Positions 1 to 19,822 of a stretch of 19,822 nucleotides of DNA are shown here, one piece after another. Below the pieces are notes generated by a model. It was not told the DNA's origin. It saw only the letters and a program-made list of their open reading frames with translations, and ran no database searches. Origin of the DNA: Bugula neritina. Lineage: Eukaryota > Animalia > Bryozoa. Each line of letters starts with the position of its first letter. The stretch's first letter is position 1. The position numbers were made by a program, and so were the translations under genes. The DNA lies in assembly GCA_964035545.1 (NCBI GenBank), contig CAXIUT010000045.1, positions 1-19,822 of the forward strand, read 5' to 3'.

Positions 1-76
1 CCCAACCCCAACCCCAACCCCAACCCCAACCCCAACCCCAACCCCAACCCCAACCCCAACCCCAACCCCAACCCCA
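1..76. repeat. Left telomere, (CCCCAA)n
   Basis: Perfect C4A2 tandem repeat at the sequence start; this is the Tetrahymena-type ciliate telomere repeat. Confidence 0.98.
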
Positions 77-108
77 GAATTATATATATTGTTATTTAAC
101 CTAACAGT

Positions 109-2006
109 ATGAACTAACATAAATAACTAGCCAGTCGTACTCCTCACAACAATTAGATAAAAAAAGATAAACTACAGATCTTGTCTGTCTTGTCATCTTT
201 GTCTCCTTTAGCGTTGTCATGCTCATCCTAGGACTCTACTGCTACTTTACGGGCTCTATCTCGAAATTTAATATTCCTTATGATCCAGACGGAAAAGGTT
301 GCGGAAGTGACTATCCAAATCATCAGTACATCTACTTTCCCTCACCATAATATGATGTAAAATGAGTATATATTAAGTCACTTTGGGTCACAACTTGTGT
401 CGCTAACTGTCCATCAGACGAAGGACAGACTGTAGATTGCAAAACCAACTCAATCGTACCTTCATGTCAATAGAACAATTCAGCACAGAATACAAAAGCT
501 TTCCATATTTATCCTACTTATTCATGTAAAAATAATAAAACTCAGTTAGAGGATCCGTATGTTTGCCAGCAGATGAAACAATCAGACAAAAGGTACTCGC
601 AGGTATCGGAGCACGTACTATCTAATAAATATTTGGATCTGTTATCAAAGATTGGTCTCTCTTCTTACTCATGGTACCAATTATACTAGTAATGATAGCT
701 ATCACTATCTTACTCATCAGACTCACTGCAGGTTATGTCATTTATATACTCTATGCCCTCTCAGTTTTAGCATTCATTGGATTTGGTCTCTACTTGATTG
801 TTCCAGGAGAAGATTCTCATTCTACATTTATCCTCAAAAAGAATAAAGTTGTTACAATACTCTGTGCAGTACTTAGCTTTTTATTAGCAATGATCATATT
901 CTGTGTCTTCTGTGCTTACAGAGGAAGAATCAAAACTGCTGTTACCTTCATTGATTCTTCTAATTAGTTCTTTAGAAATAATTATTCTATACTTATTTTA
1001 CCCTTAGTTTTAGTAGGATTTCTCATACTGTTTCTCTACTTTTGGATCTTTCTCACGCTTTCTTTCTATAGTGTCAGTATTCCTGTCCACGAACCTCAAC
1101 AAATACCTTTTCAGCATTTTAAACTAACTGCTCCTGTTGTTTGCGCACTAATAATTAACTTGTTCTACCTTATTTGGGGTGTTTTCTTCTTAATTCATAC
1201 TGGAAATTCAATTATATCAGGAACTGTTGTCAACTGGCAATACAAAAGATAAAATCCATATCTCATAGCATCAAAAAATTATCTTACTTCTCATATTGGA
1301 AGCGCTTGTCTAGGAAGTTTTCTCACAGCTCTTCTTGGACTCATCAAATTTTAACTTGACTAAGCTGATGTACTTATGTAGTAAGATAGTGTTCTCAAAG
1401 AGAAAGATAATAACAATAAAATAGATGCATTGACTGTTTGAAAAGATGCTATACCTGTTTATGTTGCTGTTGTATAGCATTTATATTTAAATGTTTCCAT
1501 CACGCAGCTTACTCATACCAAAATCTTACAGGCCTGCCTTACTGTCAATCATCAAGTGAAGTTTATGATCTAATACGAGTTCATCGATAAGAATGGAGCA
1601 TAATTGCCTTTTTATATCTCGTACCATCTTTTTAATATAGATTTTTGATCAATTCATTCCTCTAGCTCTCACTATAATCAATATTTTAATAGCCAATGCA
1701 CTAATAGGAAGTATATAGCTGTTTAAAGATAATACCTCTAATCGACTCTTAGTCTTTTTCATTGTAGGGATAGTTACCTATGCTATATCTCAATTTTTCA
1801 TTGGTATTTATTCAGAAACGATACAATCCTTGTTCGTTATAGAGGAATTTCATAATAATCTTCTTATTGATAAAGACAATCACCCTTTAGAACTTGAAGA
1901 CTTCATGCATGACGATAAATAAAAAAATCTATCAAAAATAGTTAGTCCCAGATAAAAAGTTGGAAGTCCCAGATATTCTCTTTTTCCTCAGAAAGATAAT
2001 CCTTGA
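109..2006 (+). CDS. Choline transporter-like (CTL/SLC44 family) membrane protein, about 598 aa
   Basis: ATG109 to TGA2004-2006 with TAA/TAG read as sense. Introns 137-156, 357-377, 526-545, 1370-1389 and 1621-1640 give a 1797-nt CDS. Motifs: RxTTDLVCLVIF, PYDPDGKGCG, CVANCP, RIKTAV, HIGSACLGS, Cys-rich CLKRCYTCLCCC, and many TM helices. Confidence 0.88.
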
Positions 2007-2036
2007 TATTTTAATTTATAAGTAATCTATTTTTAT

Positions 2037-4394
2037 TCAATCACTATGAATCTCCTTGAACTTGCTTCCAAATACCAATGATGTAATAGCCATCAACTTA
2101 ATCAAAATATTCAAAGCAGGACCTGATGTATCTTTCAATGGATCTCCTACAGTATCTCCTACGACTGCTGCTTTATGAATGTCTGTTCCTTTACGAACCA
2201 CATTACCAGCATCATCCTGCATAGCTCCACTTTCAATATATTTTTTTGCATTATCCCAAGCACCTCCAGTATTTGCAGCTGAAATAGCCATCTGAACTCC
2301 ACTAACGATTGCTCCAGGCAAAAATCCAGCCAATATTTTAGGACCAAAAGCCAAACCTAACACCAATGGACTCAAAATAACCTAAATATTAAGATTAATA
2401 CTAATAATCCAGGAGCAATCATCTCTTTTAGGGAAGATCTAGTTGATATTCTGATACAAGCTTTGTAATCAGGCTATGAAGTGCCCTCAATAATACCTGG
2501 ATCATTTCTAATTTGTCTTCTCACCTCCTCTACCATACCAAAGGCAGCTTTTCCGACTGATCTTATAGTGAAAGCTGAAAAAACGTAAGGCAACATAGCT
2601 CCTAGCATAAGTCCAGCAAAGATTTCGGGTTTAGTCATAGCGATATCTGAGGCAGCCTATCTTGTATCTAACTGCGCATTATGCAAGAATCCACCAAAAA
2701 GAGATAAAGAGACCAAAGCAGCTGATCCAATAGCAAATCCTTTACCAATAGCAGCAGTAGTATTACCAGCAGCATCTAGAGCATCAGTTCGACTTCTCAC
2801 TTCTTCACCCATATTAGCCATCTCAGAAATACCTCCAGCATTATCACTAATAGGTCCATAACCATCTATAGCCAAACTTAAAGGTAGATTAGACAACATT
2901 CCCAATGCTGACAAAGCAACTCCATAGTAACCTAAGAAGTTGTTTGAAACAAAGGCTGTAATAGCAATAAATATAGCTGGAATAAGAGTACTCATGTATC
3001 CAAGAGCAAGACCCAAAGTAACATTAGATGCTGGACCTGCTTTGCAAGTATCAGCTAACTCTCGAACTGGGCCATATGAATGAGAAGTGACAAATTAAGT
3101 GAAAGCTGCAATAATCATACCAGAAATCAGACCTAAAATAGAGCAGAGATAAGGTTTCCATCTTTATATGATGGTGCCTTCAACATCACCATTCAACTTG
3201 ATAGTTGAAAACTCAGGGAAGGAAAATACACATACGAGATATGTGATACCCAAAAGAGCGACTGTTGAACCAACGAGTTGCACTTTCAAAGTAGATTCAA
3301 TTTTATTGTTTGTATCAACTTTCATAACATAGATAGCCAGGATGCTAATGAGTAAGCAAACAATAATACCAATAGCAATGAGGACAAGAGGATACATCAA
3401 AACAGATAGATATCTATTACAAACTTACATTTTAGGATCATTTCCACCCATCAAAGTATCAGCTGAGATAACCAAAGCTGCACAAGTAGACTCAGCAAAA
3501 GAACCGAATAGATCAGCACTCATACCAGCAACATCTCCCACATTATCTCCCACATTGTCAGCAATAGTAGCTGGATTTTTTGGACTATCTTCAGGAAGAT
3601 CTTTTTCTACTTTTCCAACCAAATCGGCACCTACATCAGCTGCTTTAGTATAAATTCCTCCACCAACTCGTCCGAAAAGAGCCACAAAGGAACCTCCAAG
3701 ACCATACCCAGCAATAGCTTAGAATAACTTTTTATATCCTTCTTTATCTGATGGCATCTTTTAATCTCCATCATCATTGATAGCCTTGAAAATAAGAATC
3801 ATAAAAGTCAACACTAAATCTATTGATAAATACCTAAAAGTCCCAATGAAACAAGAGCGAATCCCATGGAACAACCAGCTCGATAGGCAACTCTAAAAGC
3901 AGGAGCGAGACCAATTCTAGCACAGAAGGTTGTTCTGAAGTTAGTTTGAGTAGCGATGACCATACCTATAGATCCACAAACGATTGAAATAATGGCTCCA
4001 ATAGCAAAAGCAAATGCAGTCATGATTCCTTCAGTAGTAAGGAAAGTGATAACAATGAACATCACTGCAACGAATATTAAACATATGAGATATTCTTGTT
4101 TAAGGAATTCAACAGCACCCTAAATAGTAATAAAAGTACATTTGCAATTTTATCTCCCAACTCAATAAGCAACTTTCTTTGATCATCAGAAATATTTTAA
4201 ACCAACTGGGTGGAAGAAGTAGTTTCAGCTGAAGCCACGTCAATTTGTCTGACTTTGATGAAATTAAAGATGGCCCAGAAAATACCCAGAAGACAACAGA
4301 TAATGATAATGATGATCGAAGTGGTGAAGTCAAATGAACCGTAGCAATCAGTGTTGTCTCCCTGAAGAGAGAACAAAGAAAGCCCCTCACTCAT
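2037..4394 (-). CDS. VP1: Vacuolar-type H+-translocating pyrophosphatase, K+-dependent (type I), about 765 aa
   Basis: Motifs [51 protein letters not shown] (Ala marks the K+-dependent type), GGAWDNAKK and [10 protein letters not shown]. Introns 4120-4139, 3814-3833 and 2382-2401 give a 2298-nt CDS ending at TGA. Confidence 0.96.
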
Positions 4395-4573
4395 ATTTAC
4401 CAAAGATTTATTATCAACTTTAATATTCAAATTTCATATTAAATCATCTTATTAATAAGTATTTAAATTAAATCATAGATATTGATCTTTATCGGGATGT
4501 TCTAGTCTTTTTGAAATAAAAATAAATCAATGATACTTGAGTGCGTGTTTGATGTTAAATTTTAATAATAAAT

Positions 4574-4579
4574 AAAAAA
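4574..4579 (-). terminator. RNA polymerase III oligo-T terminator of the tRNA
   Basis: TTTTTT immediately 3' of the tRNA on the minus strand. Confidence 0.65.
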
Positions 4580-4652
4580 TTCCCAATCCGGGGATCGAAC
4601 CCGGCCCGCCAGGGTGAAAACCTGGTATCCTAACCATATAGACTAATTGGGA
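4580..4652 (-). tRNA. tRNA-Glu (anticodon TTC)
   Basis: The reverse complement folds as a cloverleaf: acceptor TCCCAAT/ATTGGGA, D-loop TGGTTA, anticodon stem CCAGG/CCTGG with loop TT-TTC-AC, T-loop GTTCGAT. Confidence 0.95.
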
Positions 4653-4820
4653 GATGATAATATCTTCTACTCTCTTACTCTTATATTATTCAATTAATAT
4701 CAACTACCAACCTCATCCGCTGTTTTTATCCAAATCAACTCCATTATAAAACTATCAATTTAATGCCAATAATATATTTATCAATATAATAAACTTAAAA
4801 ATAAATAAAAATAAATAAAA

Positions 4821-7649
4821 TCATGAGCAACGATCAAACAATGGCTGTCCCTACCTACATCTCAAACACTGCTTAACATCATAATTAAATTCCAAACAAC
4901 GAAGATCAATTAATTCACAGATAAAGTTTTTAAGATAATACCCTTGCTTGCACTACGAACAATACACTCCACTATACTTGATGCAGTAAACATCAACTCC
5001 TAAGGCAGGATATATACAACTACCATCAGAATATATGTAGTTTTACTTGCATGTCAGACATCGTCCAGTTTTGAAAGAATAAGTCAAACAAAATTGTGAT
5101 ACCTGATAACATATTCCATCATTTGAATAAAAACCATTCTAACACACACTGCAGTAAGATTCATTCACTCCTATCCTACAAAACGGGATATTAAAGTTGT
5201 TTTTATCAGATTAATCATAGATGCACCTACCATCAGATATATTATATCCTTATTGACATTCCTAACACACTAAGTCAACTCTTTTCAAGCAAAGATCCAC
5301 ACTTTGACCAGAATTAATCACACAATTTCCATCTTGTAATGTATATCCTTGGTAACAAGAAGTGCAATCTCCATTTGATTGATTATAATTTTTACATAAA
5401 GGATTTACAATCCCACATACGCCCTACAACTAGATAAACCCTGAATAACACTATTGACATGATGATTCATTGGTAAATATTTTACAATTCGAATCAACTC
5501 CTTCCAAACTGCCATAATTGGTGCATTTTCCGTCCAATAAAAAATATCCTTTGATACACTTAGAACAAAAACCAGATAATTTGTTATATTATTTACAAGT
5601 CTATATTATTTTAACTGAGTTATCTTAGGGACTGAACCAAATTGTTTGCTATTTTTTAATACAAGTTCCATGGAAAAGATCAAATCCAGGAAAACAGGAT
5701 GTGCAATGTCCACTATATTTGTTATATGATCGACATAGTGGGTTAACTTTGAGGCAAATATTGTTTTTTAGATAATAAAATTTATTGCAAAAAGAACATC
5801 TACCTTTTCGATTGTATTGTCTACAGTTTTCTATTTTAGGAAGAAGTAAACATTGCCTATTCGATAAAACAAAACCAGGATAACATGACATACACTATCC
5901 ATTACTTTTATTATATACTTTACAATCTTTATTTGGTAATTTACAAAGATTATATTCCAAATAATATCCATCATAACATAGTAAACACACCTACTCATCA
6001 TATTTCTTACAATTTATATCAATTAGAGTAGATAACACACAAGACTGTCGACTCAAAACAGAATCAGATCTGCAATTCAAACATCTACCCGAGGAATCAT
6101 GAGATATACAGCCAGAAGGGAGGCTTTTATAACATTTGCCATTAGTGCTCAATATATAATTTGACATGCATTGAAGACACTAGTTGTCTCTGATAGAAAT
6201 ACAGGCATAGTGTTTACTGCCTTTGTTGTTGAGGCATCTTCCATTGATCAGTTTAAATTAAGTATAACAAACCACACATTTTCCATTAGATAAAAATATA
6301 GAACAATATTCAGGGATCTACACACATACGTCCAAAACTACAACAAAACCTATCTCGCATTGTCTACACTTCGGATACTAAGAATAACTATCATACAACA
6401 AACAGTGTTAGACAGTCTAATTAATCCTAAAACAACTATCAAATTTCATATAGCTATTCTAAATACATTTAAGACAATTTCCATCTCTATCAGCCTACAG
6501 ACAAAGTTCAGGAAGTTAACGACATGTATCCACAGAAGCATAGTACCCTGAACTACAAGAATAACAGATAGTATCAGAAGAGTTCAGACAATTAGGATCA
6601 TATAACAGACATCTATCACTGTTGTTGCTCAATTTATACAGTTACCTGCAAAGAAGACACTAATTATCAGTTTGATTTAGACAATAAGGATCTTTGCATC
6701 GACCTGAATCGATTTTGAAATATTTATGAATACAAGATAAACATTATCCTTTAGTGTTATAAGTCAAACAATATTAAGATACTTTTTAGCATGAGTAACC
6801 CTTTGAATAGAAGCGATCAGCACATCGAATACATTGTCCAGTTGGAGTAATATTCAAACAATTATCTGTAAAACCTACAAACAAGTATCATTCAGCAATT
6901 CATAATTGGTAAAACATTATTAACAATTTTAGCTTTAACTATTAAATAATTTACATCCCAAAGGCAAAATCTAACATTCATACATCTTATTCATATACTA
7001 CAAGTCAGTACAATGAGGAACAGGCACACATTTATTCCTTAACTCCTTAAAACCAGATTTACACAGCAAACACCCTTAGCTATCATATAAATAACAATTA
7101 TCTACTTTGTATTCTACTTTCGAACAACTAAAACCAACCAAATTATACCCTTTCGCACACATCTGACATGCCCCACTACCAACGTCAACTTTTGCACAAT
7201 TCCGACGAATATAAAAACATCTATTAGAACTCAATATATATCCAGATGGCAAGATTTACACGTCTAATTCTCATATTCCTAGCAATGAAGAGTACCCACA
7301 CATGATTTCGATTGAAGAATCGTTCCAAAAGAACATCTAGTGCACTCTTATTTTTTGTATTAAATACATCCACTATAATCTTTAACACATTTATTATCAA
7401 GTCTTTTGTATGTTGGCTGCATTTCATACATTCTGACCTTGAAAAACCAAAAAGAATACAATTATCTTCCCCTGATGTTTCAAAACATTTGCCATCAATG
7501 TTTAATTCATATCCTGACTTGCATGCTGTTGCATTTCCGTTCAGAATAATTGCAAACCAAGGCACCCAACTGAACAGCTTTGACTTAGATGTTTAAATGA
7601 AAACTAAGAGAGAGAAGAATAGTAGCAAATAGGGTATATTATAAGTCAT
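4821..7649 (-). CDS. Secreted/surface cysteine-rich CxxC-repeat (furin-like/growth-factor-receptor-like) protein, about 940 aa, with frameshifts in the 5' part
   Basis: ATG7649 is followed by a signal-peptide-like YLLLFFSLLVFI, then many CxxCxxG(Y/F)xLxxxxC repeats to TGA4821-4823. The frame is clean from about 6870 to 4821. Keeping the Cys pattern needs single-base shifts near 7585, 7560, 7530, 7418, 7248 and 6875. Confidence 0.8.
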
Positions 7650-7685
7650 AATATTATTAGTAAAATATTTAACTGTTAACTCTTC

Positions 7686-10238
7686 ATGTACACCTCTCCC
7701 CAATCAAAATAGTCAAACACATTGATATTCCCGACATCCAAACTCCTCTCCTCACCAAAAACACCAACCTAAAGCAATAAGAGCAAGAAAAAGATCAATT
7801 TTTGATAAAAACACGTATGTAAATTCAAAAACTCAAAGAAAGCTAACAGTACCAATCAGCTCTGAATAAAATAAACATGCTTATCAACAAATATCCAAAG
7901 ATATAAGAAGTTATCAACTAAAAGGATAAATAACTTTCTCTCTCAAGCACTTTCAAGAAGCGATAGATACTTATGACCAACTACTTGCCCTAACAACTAT
8001 TGAAGAAAGTGTTAAACTGACATCAAATCAAATGAAAATAAATAACTAAAATACACTAATCTAACTGAAAAGAATGAGAGCACTTTACTATTATAACAAA
8101 GGTTTATGTCCTGCAGAAGATGAATCAACATTCAAAGGCAGTTTAAAACTTTAAAAAGGCAAAATAATTAAATAAAAGTAAAACATAGATATATCTTTGT
8201 ATGGCTTAGAGTTATAGAAGTTTAAAAAATATGGATAAAGTTTATTAAATATATCAAAAAATAATAACAAATAATCCATAAAAAAGTTAATATCTATTCA
8301 AAATTATAAAAATATGTTCAGAATTAAAGACTATCAAACTATGCTTGCATTTATAGATAAAGGTTTACTATTTTGGCAAAACTAAGCCTTCAAAAGAAGT
8401 TAGAACTATAATTTAATAACTTATCTTAGTAAAGCTGACTGTCTAAGCAAACCTTCATAAATATTAATAAGCAATTCATTTCTATGTTCAAATATTATCT
8501 TTTTCATAGACAAATACATTAAAAATAAATAAAAATATACCATAAACTAGCTTTATGCTATGACTCTTTGGGCAATTTACCATTTTCCTAAACATACTAT
8601 CTTAAAATACTAGATATCAACGATAAATAATACAATACAATAAACAATCTAGCAAATTTGTATCTTCGTCAAAATAAATACTAAAAAGCATTAAATATCT
8701 TAAACAAAGCAATCATGAATATTCTAAAATAACAATCAACCCAATAGACAATTTTAACTCTCTTAAAATGCCATCGAGTAATATCACTAGTAAAACTAAA
8801 TTTAATAATCTAAGCAAGTCAAGATATAAAAGAATATAATATAGATTTCATAAAAAGGAAAGCTAAAATAAATAAAAGAAATAAAAGATTAGAATAACTA
8901 TCAATTTATCAAATCAATAATAAATAAAATACAAAAATAGCATAATCAACTAAACAAAATAAAATAAGATAGATAAGATAGATAAGATAGATAAGAAATA
9001 ATAAAAATATAAAAATAATTATTATGTTCTTTTACATAATAACTAAATAACTAAAAAAAACCTAATTAACATAAAGTAGATCTATAAAACTTATAAAATA
9101 GAATAGATCGTTTATACGGCTAATAGTAACACTCAAAAAGAAAACTTTATAACAACATTAATAAAATACCACAAAAGTACACAATAAAATCATATAAATA
9201 GAAAGCATAATCAATAAAAAATAATCAAATAATTGTATGTTTTAAACAGAATTGCAACAACTCAAATTAGAACATCATCAAATATATAATATGATTAAGG
9301 AATTTAAGAATTAATAAAAATATGGAAATTAGATGCAGTTGTCAATCAACTCCTACAATCTAATCAAAAAGATAAGGCGAAATATATACAATATATGTAC
9401 TGGATATTTAAATTCTTATTTCATGCGATTCGATTGATTGCTAATCAACTTGTAGTCAAAAATTAAAATAATATACATATCAGTAAAATATCTAAGTTTT
9501 TTCATAAATTCAAACAATCTTTTCTACTTGAGCAATATACCCAAAATAGGCACCATCTGCTAAACAGTTACAGCCATCATGAACATCTATCTAGATTAAT
9601 AAAGTGATATCATCTATAAAAGTTTAAATAAAATAATAACCAATAACTACTAACTCGAGAGAGATCTACAAACAGCTCTAGAACAATCACTAATCTATCT
9701 AGCAAAACAAAATTATATCTCATAAGCAATCAAACAACATAAAAACAACTGTATCGCTCAATAGATGAAAACACATGTGAAGGCTTATCAATGGTTCAAA
9801 GATAAAAAGAAAAAAGTTGTCAATAAAATATTCAAAATAGAACATGAATCACATTCATAATAAAAAATAATATAAGATCTTGTAGTATAAGATATCAGCA
9901 GTATTTTTGTCTATCTAGTAAAAAACAAAGTACTCTATTCACATCAAACCCAACAAAATAAATAACTCCTCAAAGAAGTCATTTAAAAGACACTGATCCA
10001 TAAACACAAATAAAAGCAAATCAACTAAATCTACAACAAATCAACAAATAAGTAGACATAGTACACCTAAGGATGCTCAAAATGTCTCATCTATCACACC
10101 ACCATTCCAAACCAGCCATTTCCATTTCTGATCAACCGCAACCAAATCATCGATTCCCTCATCGGTGATGCTATCAAGTAGAATAATACGGAGCTGTTTA
10201 TGGCACTTGTAGGACAACTTGATTTCAAAATGATATGA
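7686..10238 (+). CDS. TPR-repeat protein with coiled-coil C-terminal region; multiply frameshifted (sequence error or pseudogene)
   Basis: TPR-like segments YQLKGEITFSLKHFQEAIDTYDQLL, YYYNKGLC/LQKMNQHSKAVENFKKA, LHKYEEAIHFY, IYHKLALCYDSLG and NNLANLYLRQNKYEKALNILNKAI lie in different frames. The last frame ends at TGA10236-10238. The start (7686 or 7817) is uncertain. Confidence 0.6.
8964..8995 (+). repeat. Short 9-bp tandem repeat (ATAAGATAG) x about 3.5 inside the TPR gene
   Basis: Directly visible; reads EDREDREDRE in one frame if TAA=Glu. Confidence 0.7.
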
Positions 10239-10275
10239 TATTTGAATTTAGGCTGATAATAGTATCATTATTAAG

Positions 10276-12173
10276 ATGATAAATCTCATCAATGAGTAGT
10301 GTTAAATCAAGTACCAACCACCATAAATAGTCAACACCTAGACTCCTATCCCAACGCCAACCTGACCCTCTCCATCCTTGGAACACAATCTTCAGGAAAA
10401 AGTACACTTCTCAACAATGTCTTCAAATCAGATTTTCCTGTCCTTGATTCAAGTATACAAAGAGTCAGATGTACAAGAGGGGTATGGCTTAAAAATATCA
10501 ATAACATCAACATAATCGATACTGAAGGATTCGATTCCTTATAAAGAAATTAAAACTAAAAAATATTTTAAAAACAAATGAGTCTCTTCTGTGTTGTCAT
10601 CTCAGATATTATTCTCATCAATCTTTATACATATGAAGTAGGAAGATATTCTGGAGGACATCTTGACATACTGGAAGCTATCTTTAAAGTAGGAGAAAGA
10701 CTGGTAACTCCACATCAAAAGAAGATCATCTATATCATTAGAGATTGTCCATAAGATGCTGATCATAGCATTCTATCGAACTAACTTTCAAAATAGATTA
10801 ATTAATTATCTACAAAATACAAAAATAAACAACTAAAATATACAATAGAATACTATTTTATGAGTCACTACGACTACCAACTAGATTTATTCAAAAAATA
10901 AGCAACCAGATTACTCCCAATGATAACCATTAGACGAACATCAGCAATAAACAACTACAAATAGAAAGATAGAATAAAATATTTATACTAATTATGGCAA
11001 CAAATAAAAACATCAAAAAATTAGATAGATTTAAAATCAATAGATGATGCAATTAAAAATTATGTAATGGAAAGAATGAAAAATTAGATATTTAGTATTT
11101 TAGAAAAATAATTAGATAATTTAAAAGATCTTCAATCGATTAAATCGTATTAGAGATATATATCTTTTTTAAATCGATAAATCAAACATCATTTTTAAGA
11201 GAATAAACCCAAACATATAAAATAAAAATAATTAGTAGCTTATTGTAGTAAAGTTTTTACACAATTTGAACCTACAGCACTTAAACATTTCAATACTATT
11301 GCTCTTAGAAATATCGAAGAAGAATTATAAATGATGGTATAAAATTAAATAATAAAAAATAAAAAAAGTAAAAAACTGTCTCATCTTATCTTCAAAAAAA
11401 AGAAATAAGTCACATAAATATACAAAAAAGTCATCAACTAACATCAATAATACTCACTTTTGATCAAAAACTTTCACTAAAAAATGTCAGATATCATCAA
11501 CAGATAGGAACAAAGACTAAGTCACCTCTTCAGTCAGTTCTAGTTCACACTATAAAGAGAACTCAACCTCATTATCAACTAACATTCCAATTAACTCTCT
11601 TTCAAAAAATAAATTATCAATAAAAAAATAAAAGAACTCTGCAAAGAATATCAATACAACGAATGGTAAGTTGATTTCACTTCTATTTGGGAAAGAGTGA
11701 GCTATCGATGCATATAAAAGCTAATCCCATAAATCATCCAAAAATAATCAATCAAAAGCTGTTCGAATGTAGGTGTTATTTCAGGAGATCAAAGCACCAA
11801 CATCATCGCCAGACATACAAATTTATAAAAAAAAGCACTTGACTTCTGCAGAGATATACTCACATATTTACAATAATAAAATACTTATACACAACCTCTA
11901 AGTGAAGTTAAATAAATAGTCAGAGAATGTCTCAGCCAAAGACTAACATAAGAAGTACTTTTATATTAAAGTTAGAGAGCACGCTGGAAAATATCACTTT
12001 TGATCATTTCTATTTTACTTCTACTTCTCTATGGATAATTTGAAACTGCATTGGGCTTCATGTCTTTCAAAAAACGGAAAAGAAAGTTCTATGGAAGAAT
12101 ATACTTCTGGACAATGGTTGCTTTTCTAGGAGCAACATTATGGAAATAACTAAAAGATAGAAATAAAATATGA
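10276..12173 (+). CDS. SEY1: RHD3/Sey1 (atlastin-like) GTPase, about 625 aa
   Basis: G1 ILGTQSSGKSTLLNNVF, RCTRGVW, G3 IIDTEGFD, SDIILINL, IIRD, a helical middle and two C-terminal hydrophobic segments. Intron 10311-10330, plus a possible 21-nt intron 11955-11975. TGA12171-12173. Confidence 0.85.
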
Positions 12174-12212
12174 TTTATAAAATAGATTTTCATGTGATAA
12201 AATAGTAATGAA

Positions 12213-12871
12213 TCAATTTCTAAGACCGACTTGCCAAGCAAGTGAAGGAAGTGAAACTTGTCCTCTTCCTCTGATTTTGGTAAAAGTAGATAAAAATCCA
12301 TAATTTTTATTTTTCAATATATTTTCTGTATATCCATTTTGTCTATGAGCTCCATCAAGACCGTCTTAGAAATCACTATCAGCTACAGTTTTTATTTTTT
12401 TGTTAGATTCCTATATATTAAATGATTTACTTTTTTTAGAAATTTAGCTGTTTTTCCTCTACTTTTAAAAGGAAGACAATCGAAATCTTTTTATTGCTTA
12501 TTTATATCAGTATCTGTAATATTCTTTCTCAAAGATGTATAGAAATTTATTTGTTCTTCTGTATTATGTACATGATCTTTTCCTTTCAAAAACACATGTT
12601 CGAATTCATTCGGAATCACCTTCTATTTCCTTTTCTCTTGTTATTTCTGATGCTTGAACTAATTAGATTTAGTTGTTTTGAAAAAGACTTCAGGAGGTGC
12701 TGTTTATCTATTATCTACTTTTTTAGGTTCTCCATTATCTCGTAAATTTATCACCCAAACCAACCCATTTTCAGTCATCATGCTATTCTTTATCAAATGT
12801 CGAAACTAAGTAACATTTCTAGCCATGAAATTTGTTGGACTTTTCTTAGAATTTTCCTTTCGATTCTCCAT
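12213..12871 (-). CDS. Hypothetical protein, about 212 aa, with three (W/F)xxxLR motifs
   Basis: ATG12871, one 20-nt intron 12411-12430, TGA12213-12215; 639-nt CDS with no internal TGA. Confidence 0.7.
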
Positions 12872-12930
12872 TAGTTATAATAGAAGATCTATAAATAATA
12901 TCATTCTATCATCATAAACTCATTAAATTA

Positions 12931-14036
12931 TCAATTCGCTTTATTATCCAATCTGATCATACTCATTGCCACAGGCTTAGTAGTTTTCTAGTCTTTTGAA
13001 CTAAATACTGAACCTCCTCCTCCTGCAGCTGATACTAATCCTTCGTAACTTTAGCTCACTAATTTCTTACAATTCTATGAAACATTCTATAGTATTTAGT
13101 ATCGCTTCTCTAATTGCTTCTATTATTATTTCAAAATATTTCTCTACTACAATAGTTTTTATCTAAATTTTTTCATTATTTCTTTTTTCCAACATCCTTT
13201 CTTATCTGCTTCATCACAACAAACACTCCCTTCAGTTTGATTCATCTTATTCTATATAGCTATTCTTATCTGATTAAGACTATTTTATATTTATTTCATT
13301 CGTGTGTATATTCCATCAGTAAATTCTTTAAGTTTTTATCCTCTTTTCTTAGCCTACTGATGCATTTTCTATTTAAATATCAAAGTTTTTTCCATCTTAT
13401 GAAGAATTATTTATTTCTACATTACTTGATCATTCTTTTTCTTCCACTTCTTTTTCTATTACTAAAAATATTAAGCCTTTATTATGTAAGGTCCTATCTA
13501 CTATTTTAATTTCATTAGTTAATTTTGTTTCCTTTATCAGTAAATATATACATAATGATAGTCAAAGACAACTATTAATTTTATTTATTGATTTTCTATA
13601 AACTTTTAGTCAAATTCTAACACTCTTTTTGTTTATTATTAATAACATAATTTCTAACAGTTTCATACGTCTATTCAGAACAATTACTTTTAACCTATTT
13701 AAGTGCAGAATTAACCATACCTGATTCAAACTATTAAGTAAATTTACTTTTAATAAAAGACTAATCATCAAAATAATTATAAACACTACTAATATGACTA
13801 ATATTTGAATCTATTGGTAGTACCTACATTGAAAAAGCTTATCTTTTATTATTCTTTCTCACTCTTTATTTTATTTACTACATCAATTCACTCTGTTCTT
13901 GAATAAGCAATTGATCATTGACCATATTTCCTTTTTATGACTCGATATATTGCTTCAAAATACTACTTCTAGCCTAGATCCATTCCTTCTACTGATAAAG
14001 ATTACTACCCTCACTTTATAATTTACTGTTGATCAT
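12931..14036 (-). CDS. Hypothetical coiled-coil protein, about 361 aa
   Basis: ATG14036, 20-nt intron 13532-13551, TGA12931-12933; 1086-nt CDS rich in K/E/Q. Confidence 0.7.
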
Positions 14037-14093
14037 GTTATATTATGTAAAATAACTCTTATCAATCTAAATATTTAAAGAAAATAGAAGATA

Positions 14094-14534
14094 TCATTCC
14101 TACTGCTTCAAATTTTATTATGAATGAATATCTGGTTTGCTCTTTTATAAACTTCCATCATAACGAATGTTAATAGTTTTGTTTTTTAATTCTTTTCGTT
14201 GATTTTTTAAGAAATCATTAAACTATTGTTTTCCTACAGTTTTATTCAAACTAGAAGATACAGGCTTAACTGAATGATACTGCTATCGAATATCTTCTTT
14301 ATTTCTTGTTCTTTTTAGTCTGAATTTATTAGAAGCATTGAGTTGACCCTGATCAATCATTTTGCATAGATCTTTATCTAAGATTTAATTTTTTCTATTG
14401 ACTACTTTGGTCTTAACTAGACAATATCTATTTTTTTTACTAGCAAAGAAATATTAGAGATGTTTATCTACCAATGCGTTGTATGGTATTTTTCTAGATT
14501 GAAGTGGTTATATTTTAAATTGTTTTTTCTGCAT
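14094..14534 (-). CDS. Small basic protein, 146 aa, with an ERICH3-N-terminus-like motif (possibly ciliary)
   Basis: ATG14534 to TGA14094-14096, no intron. YNALVDKHLEYFF..K.RY.LVKTKVV resembles the YNSLxDKHLxxYF motif I recall from the ERICH3 N-terminus. Confidence 0.6.
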
Positions 14535-14654
14535 TTATTATATCTATCAAACTATTTTCCCTTTTAAATGATAATTTAAAGAACCTAAAATAGAATATTT
14601 AAATAAGATCTTTATCATTTTTGTATAACTTATTTAGCATAAATTGATTTGAAT

Positions 14655-16674
14655 ATGAGACCAATCAGACCAGGACAAAAAAGAAATCAAAATACTAAGC
14701 CCAATGTAAATCCACCTTCATCTAGAATAGAAGAGGACAAAATAATCCTGACATCATCCACCCGACTAATATCAACATTGTCAATGAATAGTAAGATGAC
14801 TAAAATCAAGTACTTATACAACCACTCAGAAACTTGCTTAAGTTAATCGCCTCTCAGCCGCCTAACTAAACCTGACCATCACCAGAACCCTTGTGGTCTC
14901 CAATCCTCAAGCTTAACCCAATAAAGTTAACTATGACTATCTGTAACGAAAAAATAAAGTCAATGATTCTATCGATCAACTTGTCATGCATCTATCCTGT
15001 GAAGGAGACTACGTCCACACCGGATCTAACGAATATAAAATTCAAGAAGAAATCTAACACATTAGAAAAACAAAATTCTAAGCAGCTAAAAGACAAGCAG
15101 AACAAGAAGAACCTGGATCAGGAAAAAATGTTGAAGCCATCAAACAAGCTTTAAAAAATAAATTTGATTACAAAAATAGAGAAGTACAAACTATCTATGC
15201 TCCTATCAAAGAAAGAGGAGCAGCTACATGTCCTCCTATTACTAACAATCTAAGAGGAGAGGTCACTCAATGGGAAATGTGGGATAGTTATATTGATTAA
15301 TTCAAGAAATAAAATAAGGATGATGAAAAAGACAACAAGGAAAAGAAAGAAAAGAAGAAAGGCTAATCTTCTGGCGGAAGATATTCAACTTCATTCAAAA
15401 GATGCATGAAAATCATGGAAAGAATGATTAGACAAAACGAGGAAGATAAAAAATATAATGACTATAAGTACTATTGGCAAGAAGGATAAGAAGCTCAGAC
15501 ACAAGAAGGAGAGTTACTACCTATTTGGAGGTTAAGTTATTAAAAGAAAAAGAAACATGTCACCTCTATCTCTTGGAATCCTAAATATAAAGATCTTTTT
15601 GCCATCTCACTTGGAAGCTATGATTTCTCTAAGCAAAAAGCTGGTCAAATTCTTGTTTGGTCCCTTAAAAATGTCACTTTCCCTGAGTACAAGTATGAAA
15701 GTTTGCCAACTGGAGTTATGTGTGTTGACTGGCATCCTTCATCTCCTGCCCTCTTAGCTGCTGGACTCTATGATGGTACTGTCCTTGTTTTTGATGTAAG
15801 AAATAAACATAATAAACCCATTTATTAGTCAACAGTTAGAACCCAAAAGCATACAGATCCAGTGTGGCAGGTTAGATGGAATCCTGATACAGATAAGAAA
15901 TTCAACTTTTATTCAATTTCATCAGACGGAAGAGTGATGAACTGGAGTCTAATGAAAAATAAACTTGAACCTGATGAAGTATTCAAACTGAAACTGACAG
16001 GATAAAAAGAGGAAGAAACTTCTTTTATCGGTCTAGCATGTGGATTATGCTTTGATTTTAACAGATTTGATAACTTCTCATTCCTAGTCGGCACTTAAGA
16101 AGGTAAAATCCATAAATGTTCCCTCGCATATTCAGGTCAATACCAAGAAACATACAAAGGCCACTTACTTGCAGTTTACAAAATCAAATGGAACCATTAT
16201 CACCCTACAACTTTCATTTCTGCATCTGCTGATTGGACCATTAGAGTCTGGGATTCAACCTATCCCCAAGCACAAGTCATGATTTTCGATATGGGAATGA
16301 TAGTCGTTGATGCTATGTGGGCTCCTTACTCATCTACTGTTTTTGCATGTGCTACTCTTGAAAAGATATTTGTCTATGACCTCGATGTTGATAAACACAA
16401 AGCTTTAGCAGAAAAGAAACCAGTCAAAAACCCAAAACTTACCAACTTGACATTCAATTCCAAAGACCCAATTGTCCTTCTAGGAGACACATTCGGTGGT
16501 ATTACAGTTATTAAACTTTCTCCAAACTTGTTGAAGAGAGGACCAGAAATAAAGAAGAACGTTGAGAATCCAAAGAACCAACCTCCTCCACCAACTGAAG
16601 AAGAAATTCGCGCATACGAGAAGAAGAAGATGGACGACTTGATTTCCTTGGTATCCAAGTGGGAAAGAGATTGA
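14655..16674 (+). CDS. DNAI1: Axonemal outer-arm dynein intermediate chain (DNAI1/IC78 type, WD40), about 659 aa
   Basis: Motifs KIMERMI.QN, LLPIWR, VTSISWNPKYKDLFA.SLGSYDF, LAAGLYDGTV, KHTDPVWQV.W, SISSDGRV, FLVGTEEGKIHKCS and FISASADWT. Introns 14706-14725 and 14810-14829 give a 1980-nt CDS. Confidence 0.93.
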
Positions 16675-16768
16675 ACGAAGCAATGATCTAGATCATTTAT
16701 ATATATACTTTGAAAATAAATGGATAAAATCTATTCCTGTAATATTATACTCATCTATAATATCACAA

Positions 16769-16861
16769 TGGGGTTGGGGTTGGGGTTGGGGTTGGGGTTG
16801 GGGTTGGGGTTGGGGTTGGGGTTGGGGTTGGGGTTGGGGTTGGGGTTGGGGTTGGGGTTGG
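16769..16861. repeat. (TTGGGG)n tract: right telomere of the first minichromosome, internal in this sequence
   Basis: About 15 perfect G4T2 repeats starting about 95 bp after the dynein stop, in right-end orientation. Confidence 0.95.
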
Positions 16862-16862
16862 C

Positions 16863-18063
16863 AGAGTTATTGATCCTGAAGCAGATCCATCAAAAGGGTT
16901 TTATACTTATCTTGTTTCAGGAAGTGATGATCTTGGTGCCTTCGAGATCAGAAGAAGATATAATGATTTTTACTATTATAGAGAAGCATTAGTGAAGAAA
17001 TGGCCAGGTATTTATATTCCGCCTATTCCATAAAAAAAAATAGCAGTACCTTTTTTATTATTGAGGGAAATAAAGATGCCTAGAATATTGAAATTCGAAA
17101 GAAATATTTCGATTTCTTTTTAAAAAGATTAGCTAAAATTAAACACCTCTTCACATGTCCAATAACTCGATAATTTTTAAGAAACAAAGGCATTTAAATG
17201 TAAAAAGTAAATCTTATTTAAAAATAGTTTTATTCAACGATGATTCCACCCAAATATAATGAGTTAGTTAGTTAATACAAAGCAATCTACTCGAAACTGA
17301 ATCTATAAAACAACAATTATAATAAATAACTAAAAACTTCAATTCAAGGATTTGGATCTTTCCTTAAAAAGGCATAAAAATAATTAGACAGCCTTAAATC
17401 TCAAGTTGAAGTTATAGTGGAAGCAAGAAATGGATTCACTCAAAACCTAAGTACATTATACATAATATAGATAACTGCAATACCACTTTATTACCTTAAT
17501 ATTAGAAAAATATTTATTCAGAATATCTTCCATAAGAACAAAAGAAATAACCAAATCTCATCTTTGTAGATAACAAAAATGTTCAAACCAGTGTACAAAC
17601 TCTCAAAGATACATCAACAGTTAACTCCTTTGCTGTTTGTCTCGATCATATCAGTTATTAAATTCTCGAAGTAAAAGCTATGGAAGAAGCTCTAAAAATA
17701 AAGTAAAAATATTAACTAGATCAAACATCAAAGTAAATTGAGCTATCATAAAAAAAGACAGAACTAGCAAAACTAAAAGAAGGAAAGACAACTTTCAAAT
17801 CAATATTTTCTTTAGGATCAAAAACAGATCAAATTCAAAAAATTTAACTAGACATTCCATAAATGTAAAAATCAATAGCTCATTTATTAAATTTCAACTA
17901 AATTTTAACAACTATTTTCGGAAAGTCATAAATGCCCACATTCAAAAGAAACAAACAAATACAATACTATCGAATGATGTACTAAATTTCATAAAACTAA
18001 ATTAAATACTTAGCCTCTTATGGATAATTCATGAAAAGTGTTATGCAAGGTCTCAATAAATGA
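16863..18063 (+). CDS. PX-domain sorting-nexin-like protein, 5'-truncated
   Basis: RRRYNDF, WPGIYIPPIPEKK, IEIRKKYFDFFLKRL, then a helical region with GKTTFKSIF. Introns 17046-17065 and 17451-17470, plus a possible 21-nt intron 17207-17227. TGA18061-18063. There is no start codon because the frame begins at the telomere junction. Confidence 0.88.
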
Positions 18064-18089: not shown

Positions 18090-19578
18090 TCATATTATAA
18101 GTTTCCTATTTAGTATCTACTCATTATATAACTTTTTATTCGATATCCTGATCTCATTATTGTGAGATTTAGGCCTAGGCTTCCAAAGTATCCCCTTATT
18201 TCCACTTTGATCAGTCGTCTCCACACATCTCTTATCACTCGAATAATTCAATAACTGTGATTACTCAAATCGGCTCGAATTTTCATCAATTGTGGCAAAT
18301 ATATTTACACGAGCAGAATTAACTTCAGGAATATGAGATTTAAAGCGACTCGATGACTGCTAAATCAGATACTCTTCTCTACATATTTAATCATTTGGTC
18401 TGTTTCTTTTGGCTGAAGCATCCAAATCACATTCAGATAAAGATATTCCACAATTAAGAGAAACAAATGGAATCGATGATATCTGTCTTTATCCATTATT
18501 TGTAAATTCTTCGTTGGTTATTTTAAGTTTTTTGTCTATATTTCATCAAAATTACTTGATTTAGACATAAAAGATAATTTTTTAGTTGATTTTACACCTG
18601 AAATCTTTGACTACTGATGTTTAAGGACTCTTTCTTACTCAGGATTAAATTCCAGTTGAATTATATGTGTCTTTTGTTGAGGTTTAGGTCTGCCATTTAG
18701 AGTTATCTATCCGTTCATACTCTAAAAGTTTGTAATTGGAGGACTTTCCTCTCTTTTCCCTTTTAACTATGCTTGCTTTTCAGCATAATTTTACTTTATT
18801 TGCTTATCTCGTCGTTAATTCTACATTTATAAACTAGTACAATAGCCTTTTTCTTTTCTTACTCTCTCTCTTGCATTAATTATTTAGCCTATCGTTATTT
18901 TTTCTAAATCCTTAGCTTATCAGTAGCTTAGTTTTCTTCTTTGATGTAAATTGGAATTTCATCAACTTTTACAAATCTCTTTTTTGTTTTTTTAACAGGG
19001 GAATAGGATTTTCTCTTTTTATTATCACTTGTCATAGCTCTTTTTTCCTCTTTTAGCGCAAGTTAATTATCCTTATTCATAAAATTATTCGATCTTTGCT
19101 GAACCCTTCCAGTTTGCATCGTCATCGGTCGTTACTTATTTTTCAGTTTCATGCTTTATTCTAATTTGGAGTTGATAAACAAGCTATCACATATGTTTTA
19201 TTGATTTTTATGATGAGTTCCAATTGACTTTTGACTCATAGCATTGGTTTAATATTTAGTACTTTTTCCAATAGTTGTATTTTTGAAGCTCAGAGATGAA
19301 AAAGTTCCATTTTGTCTTTTAGGAAACAACCTTCCAGGTGCACTGGTATCTACTTGTACAGGTTTAACTACACCTAAAGGTATATGTTCTATTTTTTATT
19401 TGGTTGGTTTAGCGAACTAGTAAAAGTTGAAATTATTAAGCAGTGAATGATTAGTTTTTTTATAGATGTGATCAGGTACTTTTTTTTAGAGATATTTCTA
19501 ATAGAGTTGCTAAGCCCCCTTATCAACTACTATATCTATCGTATTAGTCACAGAATGAATAGCATAGTTTCTTTGCAT
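18090..19578 (-). CDS. Hypothetical basic protein, about 482 aa
   Basis: ATG19578, 20-nt introns 18821-18840 and 18536-18555, TGA18090-18092; 1449-nt CDS with no internal TGA. Confidence 0.68.
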
Positions 19579-19724
19579 TGATATTGACTACTTTGTAAAT
19601 ATATTTATAATCTTCAATATTCAAGTAATAACCAATCTATATCATCATTAGATTCCATTTTCATATCTATTTTGATTCTTTAACATGGCAATAATATATA
19701 TCGTATATTTTAATATTACAAATA

Positions 19725-19822
19725 GGGGTTGGGGTTGGGGTTGGGGTTGGGGTTGGGGTTGGGGTTGGGGTTGGGGTTGGGGTTGGGGTTGGGGTTGGGG
19801 TTGGGGTTGGGGGGGTTGGGGG
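19725..19822. repeat. Terminal telomere (TTGGGG)n of the second fragment
   Basis: G4T2 repeats run to the end of the window, with one G6 variant near the tip. Confidence 0.97.

Follow-up and report, generated by a model that had tools for sequence, protein, structure and literature searches.

TAA and TAG are very probably read as glutamate in a ciliate contig co-assembled with an animal genome

Introduction

Which genetic code governs contig CAXIUT010000045.1 of the Bugula neritina assembly GCA_964035545.1? The contig, 19,822 nucleotides long and analysed in its entirety (hereinafter the window; C54 in our numbering of contigs), belongs to an animal assembly of 216 Mb in 321 contigs. Its longest open reading frame (ORF) has 688 codons when TGA is taken as the sole stop, versus 191 when all three stops are applied. 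An original prediction, made from the letters of positions 109-18063, held that TAA is a glutamate codon and TGA the only stop, and proposed the nuclear code of peritrich ciliates (table 30), in which UAA and UAG (UAR) are both Glu. The reading of UAR as Glu has a single origin, in Peritrichia (PMC10553269). Comparisons with homologous proteins and orthologous loci lead us to the same code with high confidence: TAA and TAG would both specify Glu, and TGA would be the sole stop, in a ciliate co-assembled with the animal.

Results

In-frame TAA codons

Alignment columns under in-frame TAA were examined in three protein families. Specifically, the H+-translocating pyrophosphatase (H+-PPase) of the window was placed in a multiple sequence alignment with 72 bacterial and archaeal PPases, the outer-arm dynein intermediate chain 2 (IC2) of the window was compared with 119 partial homologues collected by a word search, and the tubulins of sister contigs were compared with tubulin exons of the host animal itself, which are written in the standard code. 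Any gene containing introns or in-frame stops was searched in separate pieces; read-through translations, with X at stops, served only for computations outside these searches. Well-aligned columns with at least 80% conservation were counted as conserved.

The H+-PPase gene (2037-4394, minus strand) starts at ATG 4392-4394, ends at TGA 2037-2039, contains three 20-nt introns of the form GTA...TAG (4120-4139, 3814-3833 and 2382-2401), and matches Pfam PF03030 with E as low as 2e-54. Its TAA at 3095-3097 (T[TAA]F) falls on a near-invariant Glu, with E in 70 of the 72 references and GAA in the orthologue on contig L075, described below. Its TAA at 3719-3721 falls on the Glu of the LF-E-AI motif, with E in 53/72 references and GAG in the same orthologue; this column is under the 80% cut and hence outside the conserved set. 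The remaining H+-PPase TAA codons lie in insertions or variable loops of the alignment.

The IC2 gene (14643-16674, plus strand) was identified by a PDB match to Tetrahymena DIC2 (2.5e-83, 282 bits over 191 aa); Pfam also recognises a WD40 protein in the window. The TAA at 16096-16098 corresponds to the invariant Glu of VGT-E-EGK, with E in 99/99 references. The PDB alignments of the flanking pieces leave exactly one residue missing at this codon and do not themselves give its identity. A second IC2 TAA (16003-16005) occupies a variable, mostly acidic column. In the tubulins of the sister contigs, TAA stands at the E of VG-E-GME-E-G-E-F, FFS-E-TGAGK, CL-E-HG, IGK-E-II, AVV-E-PYN and others.

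Glu is thus the consensus in 12 of the 13 conserved columns under TAA, or in 13 of 14 when the dynein site is counted, and Gln, Lys or Tyr is the consensus in none of the 14. These residues are what TAA would encode under table 6 (UAR = Gln), Mesodinium table 29 (UAR = Tyr) or the code of the ciliate Oligohymenophorea sp. PL0344 (UAA = Lys). Table 6 is the most frequent code of oligohymenophoreans, and one TAA-CAA and one TAA-AAA pair in the orthologue comparisons would suit a Gln or a Lys reading; set against the conserved columns, we regard all three as extremely improbable. Consistent with Glu as the residue at TAA and TAG (TAR), GAA and GAG (GAR) account for 3.5% and 3.7% of codons in the RHD3/Sey1-type GTPase gene and the PX-domain gene of the window, and GAR plus TAR for 10.9% and 12.0%, respectively.

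The codons of the original prediction that were looked up are where it placed them, the two in the PPase gene being on the minus strand, which it did not mention. Nine of the nine TAA codons looked up are present, namely 3719-3721 and 3095-3097 on the minus strand, those starting at 16096, 10542, 10569, 17031, 8465 and 8468 on the plus strand, and the one in the motif LIKF[TAA]L of the choline-transporter-like (CTL) gene; the reference alignments agree with it that its PPase and dynein sites are Glu positions. It had named columns dominated by Gln or Lys as the contrary outcome, and these were not seen among the 14 conserved columns.

Orthologous codon pairs

Two pairs of loci were compared codon by codon, the window with L075 and the sister contig C10 with the metagenome contig L176. 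The window and L075 have 75% DNA identity over the whole PPase gene, and in both a gene for tRNA-Glu(UUC), the ordinary Glu decoder, adjoins it (4580-4652, minus strand, in the window). These tRNAs differ at two positions, which together make a single compensatory exchange of an acceptor-stem pair (A5-T68 versus T5-A68). L075 is DYPS01000008.1, a 48-kb contig with in-frame TAA and TAG that is filed under a metagenome-assembled genome (MAG) of Desulfosporosinus sp.; it belongs to a related ciliate and has been mis-binned.

Where one partner has TAA and the other a different codon, that codon is GAA or GAG in 12 of 21 pairs; the corresponding number for TAG is 6 of 11. Jointly, 18 of the 32 changed pairs involve GAA/GAG, one involves CAA/CAG and two involve AAA/AAG. 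Judged from the aligned codons, this pattern fits what synonymous change among Glu codons would produce. Together with the conserved columns, the TAA pairs uphold the claim that TAA encodes Glu.

In-frame TAG codons and short introns

We examined TAG on its own because the related ciliate PL0344 has a split code, UAA being Lys and UAG being Glu (PMC10553269), and because a TAG of the PPase gene had initially resembled a Lys position. In the tubulins, TAG stands in three conserved columns, each of them Glu (FFS-E-TGAGK, LL-E-H and GMD-E-MEF), although sites are fewer than for TAA. Two TAGs of the window were followed to their closest orthologues, and both pair with Glu. Specifically, the H+-PPase TAG at 2474-2476 (minus strand) is GAA in L075, and the IC2 TAG at 15826-15828 (plus strand) corresponds to E in P0002, its closest orthologue (84% identical), where the 12 residues flanking it on either side are identical. 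The early idea that TAG is Lys, drawn from one PPase site, was abandoned in view of the tubulin columns and the orthologue pairs. As TAG too reads as Glu in the tubulin columns, the window sites and the changed pairs, the code is table 30, in line with the original prediction.

Part of the apparent TAG content has another source. Nine AT-rich introns, each exactly 20 nt long and of the form GTA...AG, reconcile the reading frames across the window; they lie at 1370-1389 and 17046-17065 on the plus strand and at 2382-2401, 3814-3833, 4120-4139, 12411-12430, 13532-13551, 18536-18555 and 18821-18840 on the minus strand. TAG is the final triplet of seven of them, and annotators should be aware that an intron-terminal TAG may pass for an in-frame codon in a naive reading of ORFs. 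The apparent in-frame TAGs at 4120-4122, 3814-3822 and 2382-2384 (minus strand) are in fact ends or insides of these introns. We had counted the first of these as evidence for Glu because it aligned by chance to an E column (56/72), and discarded it as the 3' end of an intron. Likewise, an apparent 1-nt frameshift in the PPase gene is really the intron 3814-3833, whose counterpart in L075 has 21 nt and therefore remains in frame if read through.

The intron-derived TAGs would be in keeping with an explanation in which in-frame TAA and TAG are in general artefacts of introns, pseudogenes or assembly errors. The codons tested above, however, align colinearly as single residues and are paired with GAA/GAG in orthologues, and the same type of column recurs in unrelated genes and on several contigs. 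The artefact explanation is thus hardly credible for the tested sites.

Candidate tRNAs and opposing evidence

A pattern search of the assembly recovered the 3' halves of two tRNAs with a CUA anticodon, both on ciliate contigs (C10:16818 and C256:3992). A DNA search of the assembly for relatives of the window tRNA-Glu returned only the tRNA-Glu gene itself. An exact-pattern scan located on 78 metagenome contigs (L155-L232) a tRNA family, with CUA or UUA as anticodon, whose members have one D-arm and one T-arm in common. The main CUA type of this family has a 3' half identical to that of the C10 gene, and L176, one of the 78 contigs, is syntenic with C10. Inspected by eye, the CUA family has an acceptor stem starting with U1-C2-C3, a D-loop like that of the window tRNA-Glu and a variable loop of 4 nt. 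On L196, a tRNA(UUA) is 88% identical to the adjoining tRNA-Glu(UUC).

Several observations weigh against the reading of both codons as Glu. For TAA, the sole exception among the 14 conserved columns is a variable alpha-tubulin loop (S), and a few TAR codons stand at non-Glu residues, all of them in variable loops or insertions. For TAG, bacterial PPases have mostly R or K in the column of 2474-2476, a variable column with R/K/E across the wider family, and more distant ciliates show Q and other residues at the IC2 site 15826-15828. For the tRNAs, the best match of the CUA family in a small local panel is an animal tRNA-Lys (75%), and its isotype is not assigned by similarity. Furthermore, although TAA is commoner than TAG, the tRNA with a TTA anticodon that the original prediction had proposed to look for was found nowhere in the assembly by two pattern searches, which needed a canonical T-loop and covered a ciliate that is only partly assembled.

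The Lys-like PPase column, the Q at the IC2 site and the tRNA-Lys match would suit a split code, in which TAA and TAG differ either as in PL0344 or in mirror image (for example, TAA = Glu and TAG = Lys or Gln). Both of these non-Glu columns are variable, however, and TAG occurs at three conserved tubulin Glu columns, is paired with Glu at both window sites, and has GAA/GAG partners in six changed pairs versus AAA in one. We therefore consider a split code highly improbable, and keep to Glu for both codons. It is unlikely, though less so, that the lineage is not peritrich and acquired UAR = Glu independently, or that UAG is decoded by tRNAs of other than Glu descent, with anticodon and T arms like those of tRNA-Lys or tRNA-Gln. 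In the case of the decoders, tRNA identity would have changed during reassignment.

Termination at TGA

The H+-PPase translation matches the Pfam profile up to the profile's last position (645/645), and TGA follows 10 codons further, the same place at which the L075 orthologue ends. The TGA of IC2 (16672-16674) lies at the conserved C-terminus, two residues before Tetrahymena DIC2 ends and level with the ends of P0001 and P0002. For alpha- and beta-tubulin alike, the gene ends at TGA in the acidic tail. No TGA was found inside regions of homology. The part of the original prediction that makes TGA the only stop thus stands, with PPase, IC2 and Sey1 all ending at TGA and the first two doing so at conserved C-termini.

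Stops that depend on context are known from Condylostoma, where all three stop codons behave in this way, and from Blastocrithidia, where UAA does. In an ambiguous code of this kind, TAA and TAG would be Glu within genes and stops for some genes. The check covered only about eight gene ends, and in the alpha-tubulin gene of C16, TAA directly precedes TGA, so that the last residue is ambiguous and the true last codon undecidable. All gene ends that can be checked by homologues are nonetheless at TGA, with TAA and TAG well upstream in the same genes, and an ambiguous code is very unlikely.

Origin and structure of the window

The window begins with a (CCCCAA)n telomere (1-75) and ends with a (GGGGTT)n telomere (19725-19822). 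The repeat is Tetrahymena-type, and a pattern search found it on many small contigs of the assembly. Tubulin genes of animal type, with several exons and no in-frame TAA or TAG, are found on the large contigs, whereas four small contigs (C87, C10, C16 and C255) carry intron-poor tubulin genes, with both in-frame TAA and TAG in three of the four. The DNA of the window is present in public runs of three studies, labelled as three different organisms, and absent from other public runs of the first of these organisms. Because of the telomeres, the tubulin genes of small versus large contigs and the distribution over public runs, we attribute the window to macronuclear ciliate DNA travelling with the animal sample. 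The ciliate would most likely be a peritrich: its C4A2 telomeres, the match of IC2 to Tetrahymena DIC2 and the fit to the single origin in the literature are consistent with the "peritrich-like oligohymenophorean" of the original prediction, so far as sequence comparison can place it.

An internal telomere block, (GGGGTT)15, lies at 16770-16862 (plus strand) and forms the right end of a first chromosome that is directly joined to the next fragment. As the block is followed by a PX ORF without a 5' end, the window can be described as one whole chromosome (1-16862) to which a 3-kb fragment ending in a telomere has been joined. The same layout occurs in contigs C10, C11, C14 and C15. One public contig spans the join at 16770-16862, and another public run has a different join, of the fragment to CCCCAA, at 17358. 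The internal telomere joins are probably chimeric. The span 109-18063, to which the original prediction refers, is not a single chromosome; the observation on its codons holds.

Two other contigs of the assembly have organelle-like features. On C214, 11 organelle-type tRNA genes are densely clustered, and C73 has 19% G+C and carries a tRNA-Phe. The two contigs probably represent mitochondrial DNA, from either the ciliate or the host.

Other genes of the window

The left end of the window carries the CTL gene (PF04515; 171-2049, bounds approximate, plus strand), which has several exons, the intron 1370-1389, and in-frame TAA and TAG. Beyond the tRNA-Glu gene lies a gene for a Cys-rich repeat protein (4821-7703, minus strand) with weak similarity to the VSP family of Giardia and many in-frame TAA and TAG codons; unlike in other genes of the window, TAG outnumbers TAA (18 versus 12 in 4821-6887, minus strand). 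It is followed by a TPR-like, Lys-rich gene region (7726-10238, plus strand) that runs through several frames and has TAA TAA at 8465-8470 in the motif KY..AI.

The RHD3/Sey1-type GTPase gene (10296-12173, plus strand) contains 38 in-frame TAA and eight TAG codons and ends at TGA 12171-12173. Its identity is given by the Pfam RHD3/Sey1 GTPase family and by a PDB match to Candida Sey1 (2.7e-07); a search of a second piece of the gene against PDB gave chance ankyrin-repeat matches only. Unnamed Lys-rich gene(s) occupy 12314-14546 (minus strand), with the introns 12411-12430 and 13532-13551. To the right of the internal telomere lie the PX-domain gene (Pfam; 16863-18063, plus strand), whose 5' end is cut by the junction and which has TAA 17031-17033 and the intron 17046-17065, and further unnamed Lys-rich gene(s) (18090-19620, minus strand) with the introns 18536-18555 and 18821-18840.

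Discussion

In the decoding that we propose for this ciliate, UAA and UAG would be read as Glu by suppressor-type tRNAs, with the CUA-anticodon tRNAs of the sister contigs presumably charged with Glu and a UUA-anticodon tRNA probably encoded in the unassembled part of the genome. The release factor would recognise UGA only, UGA ending every gene examined, and eRF1 may have lost recognition of UAR.

The finding is correct and useful for annotation, and the code is not new, because UAR = Glu is already established in Peritrichia (PMC10553269); the window provides one more instance of a known variant. The caution in the original prediction about annotating with table 1 or 6 was well placed, since tables 1, 6 and 11 all break or mistranslate every gene. 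Table 30 and very short (20-nt) introns are needed for these contigs, which should be flagged as those of a cobiont ciliate and not as animal genome. The related ciliate contig in the public "Desulfosporosinus" MAG indicates that the same problem has reached prokaryotic bins.

Among known systems, the PL0344 code and tables 6, 29 and 31 are each contradicted by a feature tested on the sequences. Blastocrithidia (table 31) also reads UAR as Glu, but it is a trypanosomatid in which UGA is Trp and UAA also terminates, whereas the window ciliate has TGA at conserved C-termini. Table 6 (Tetrahymena and Paramecium) shares sense UAR, UGA as sole stop and C4A2 telomeres with the window ciliate, but its UAR is Gln, and no conserved TAA or TAG column of the window ciliate has Gln. 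PL0344 is likewise an oligohymenophorean ciliate with UAG = Glu, UGA as sole stop and CUA-anticodon tRNAs, but differs in that UAA is Lys there, whereas TAA falls on Glu in all but one of the conserved columns here. The peritrich code (table 30; Vorticella, Opisthonecta and Carchesium) agrees with the window ciliate in TAA and TAG as Glu and TGA as sole stop, with no difference in code found, and the telomeres of the window are of oligohymenophorean type and its dynein IC2 is Tetrahymena-like.

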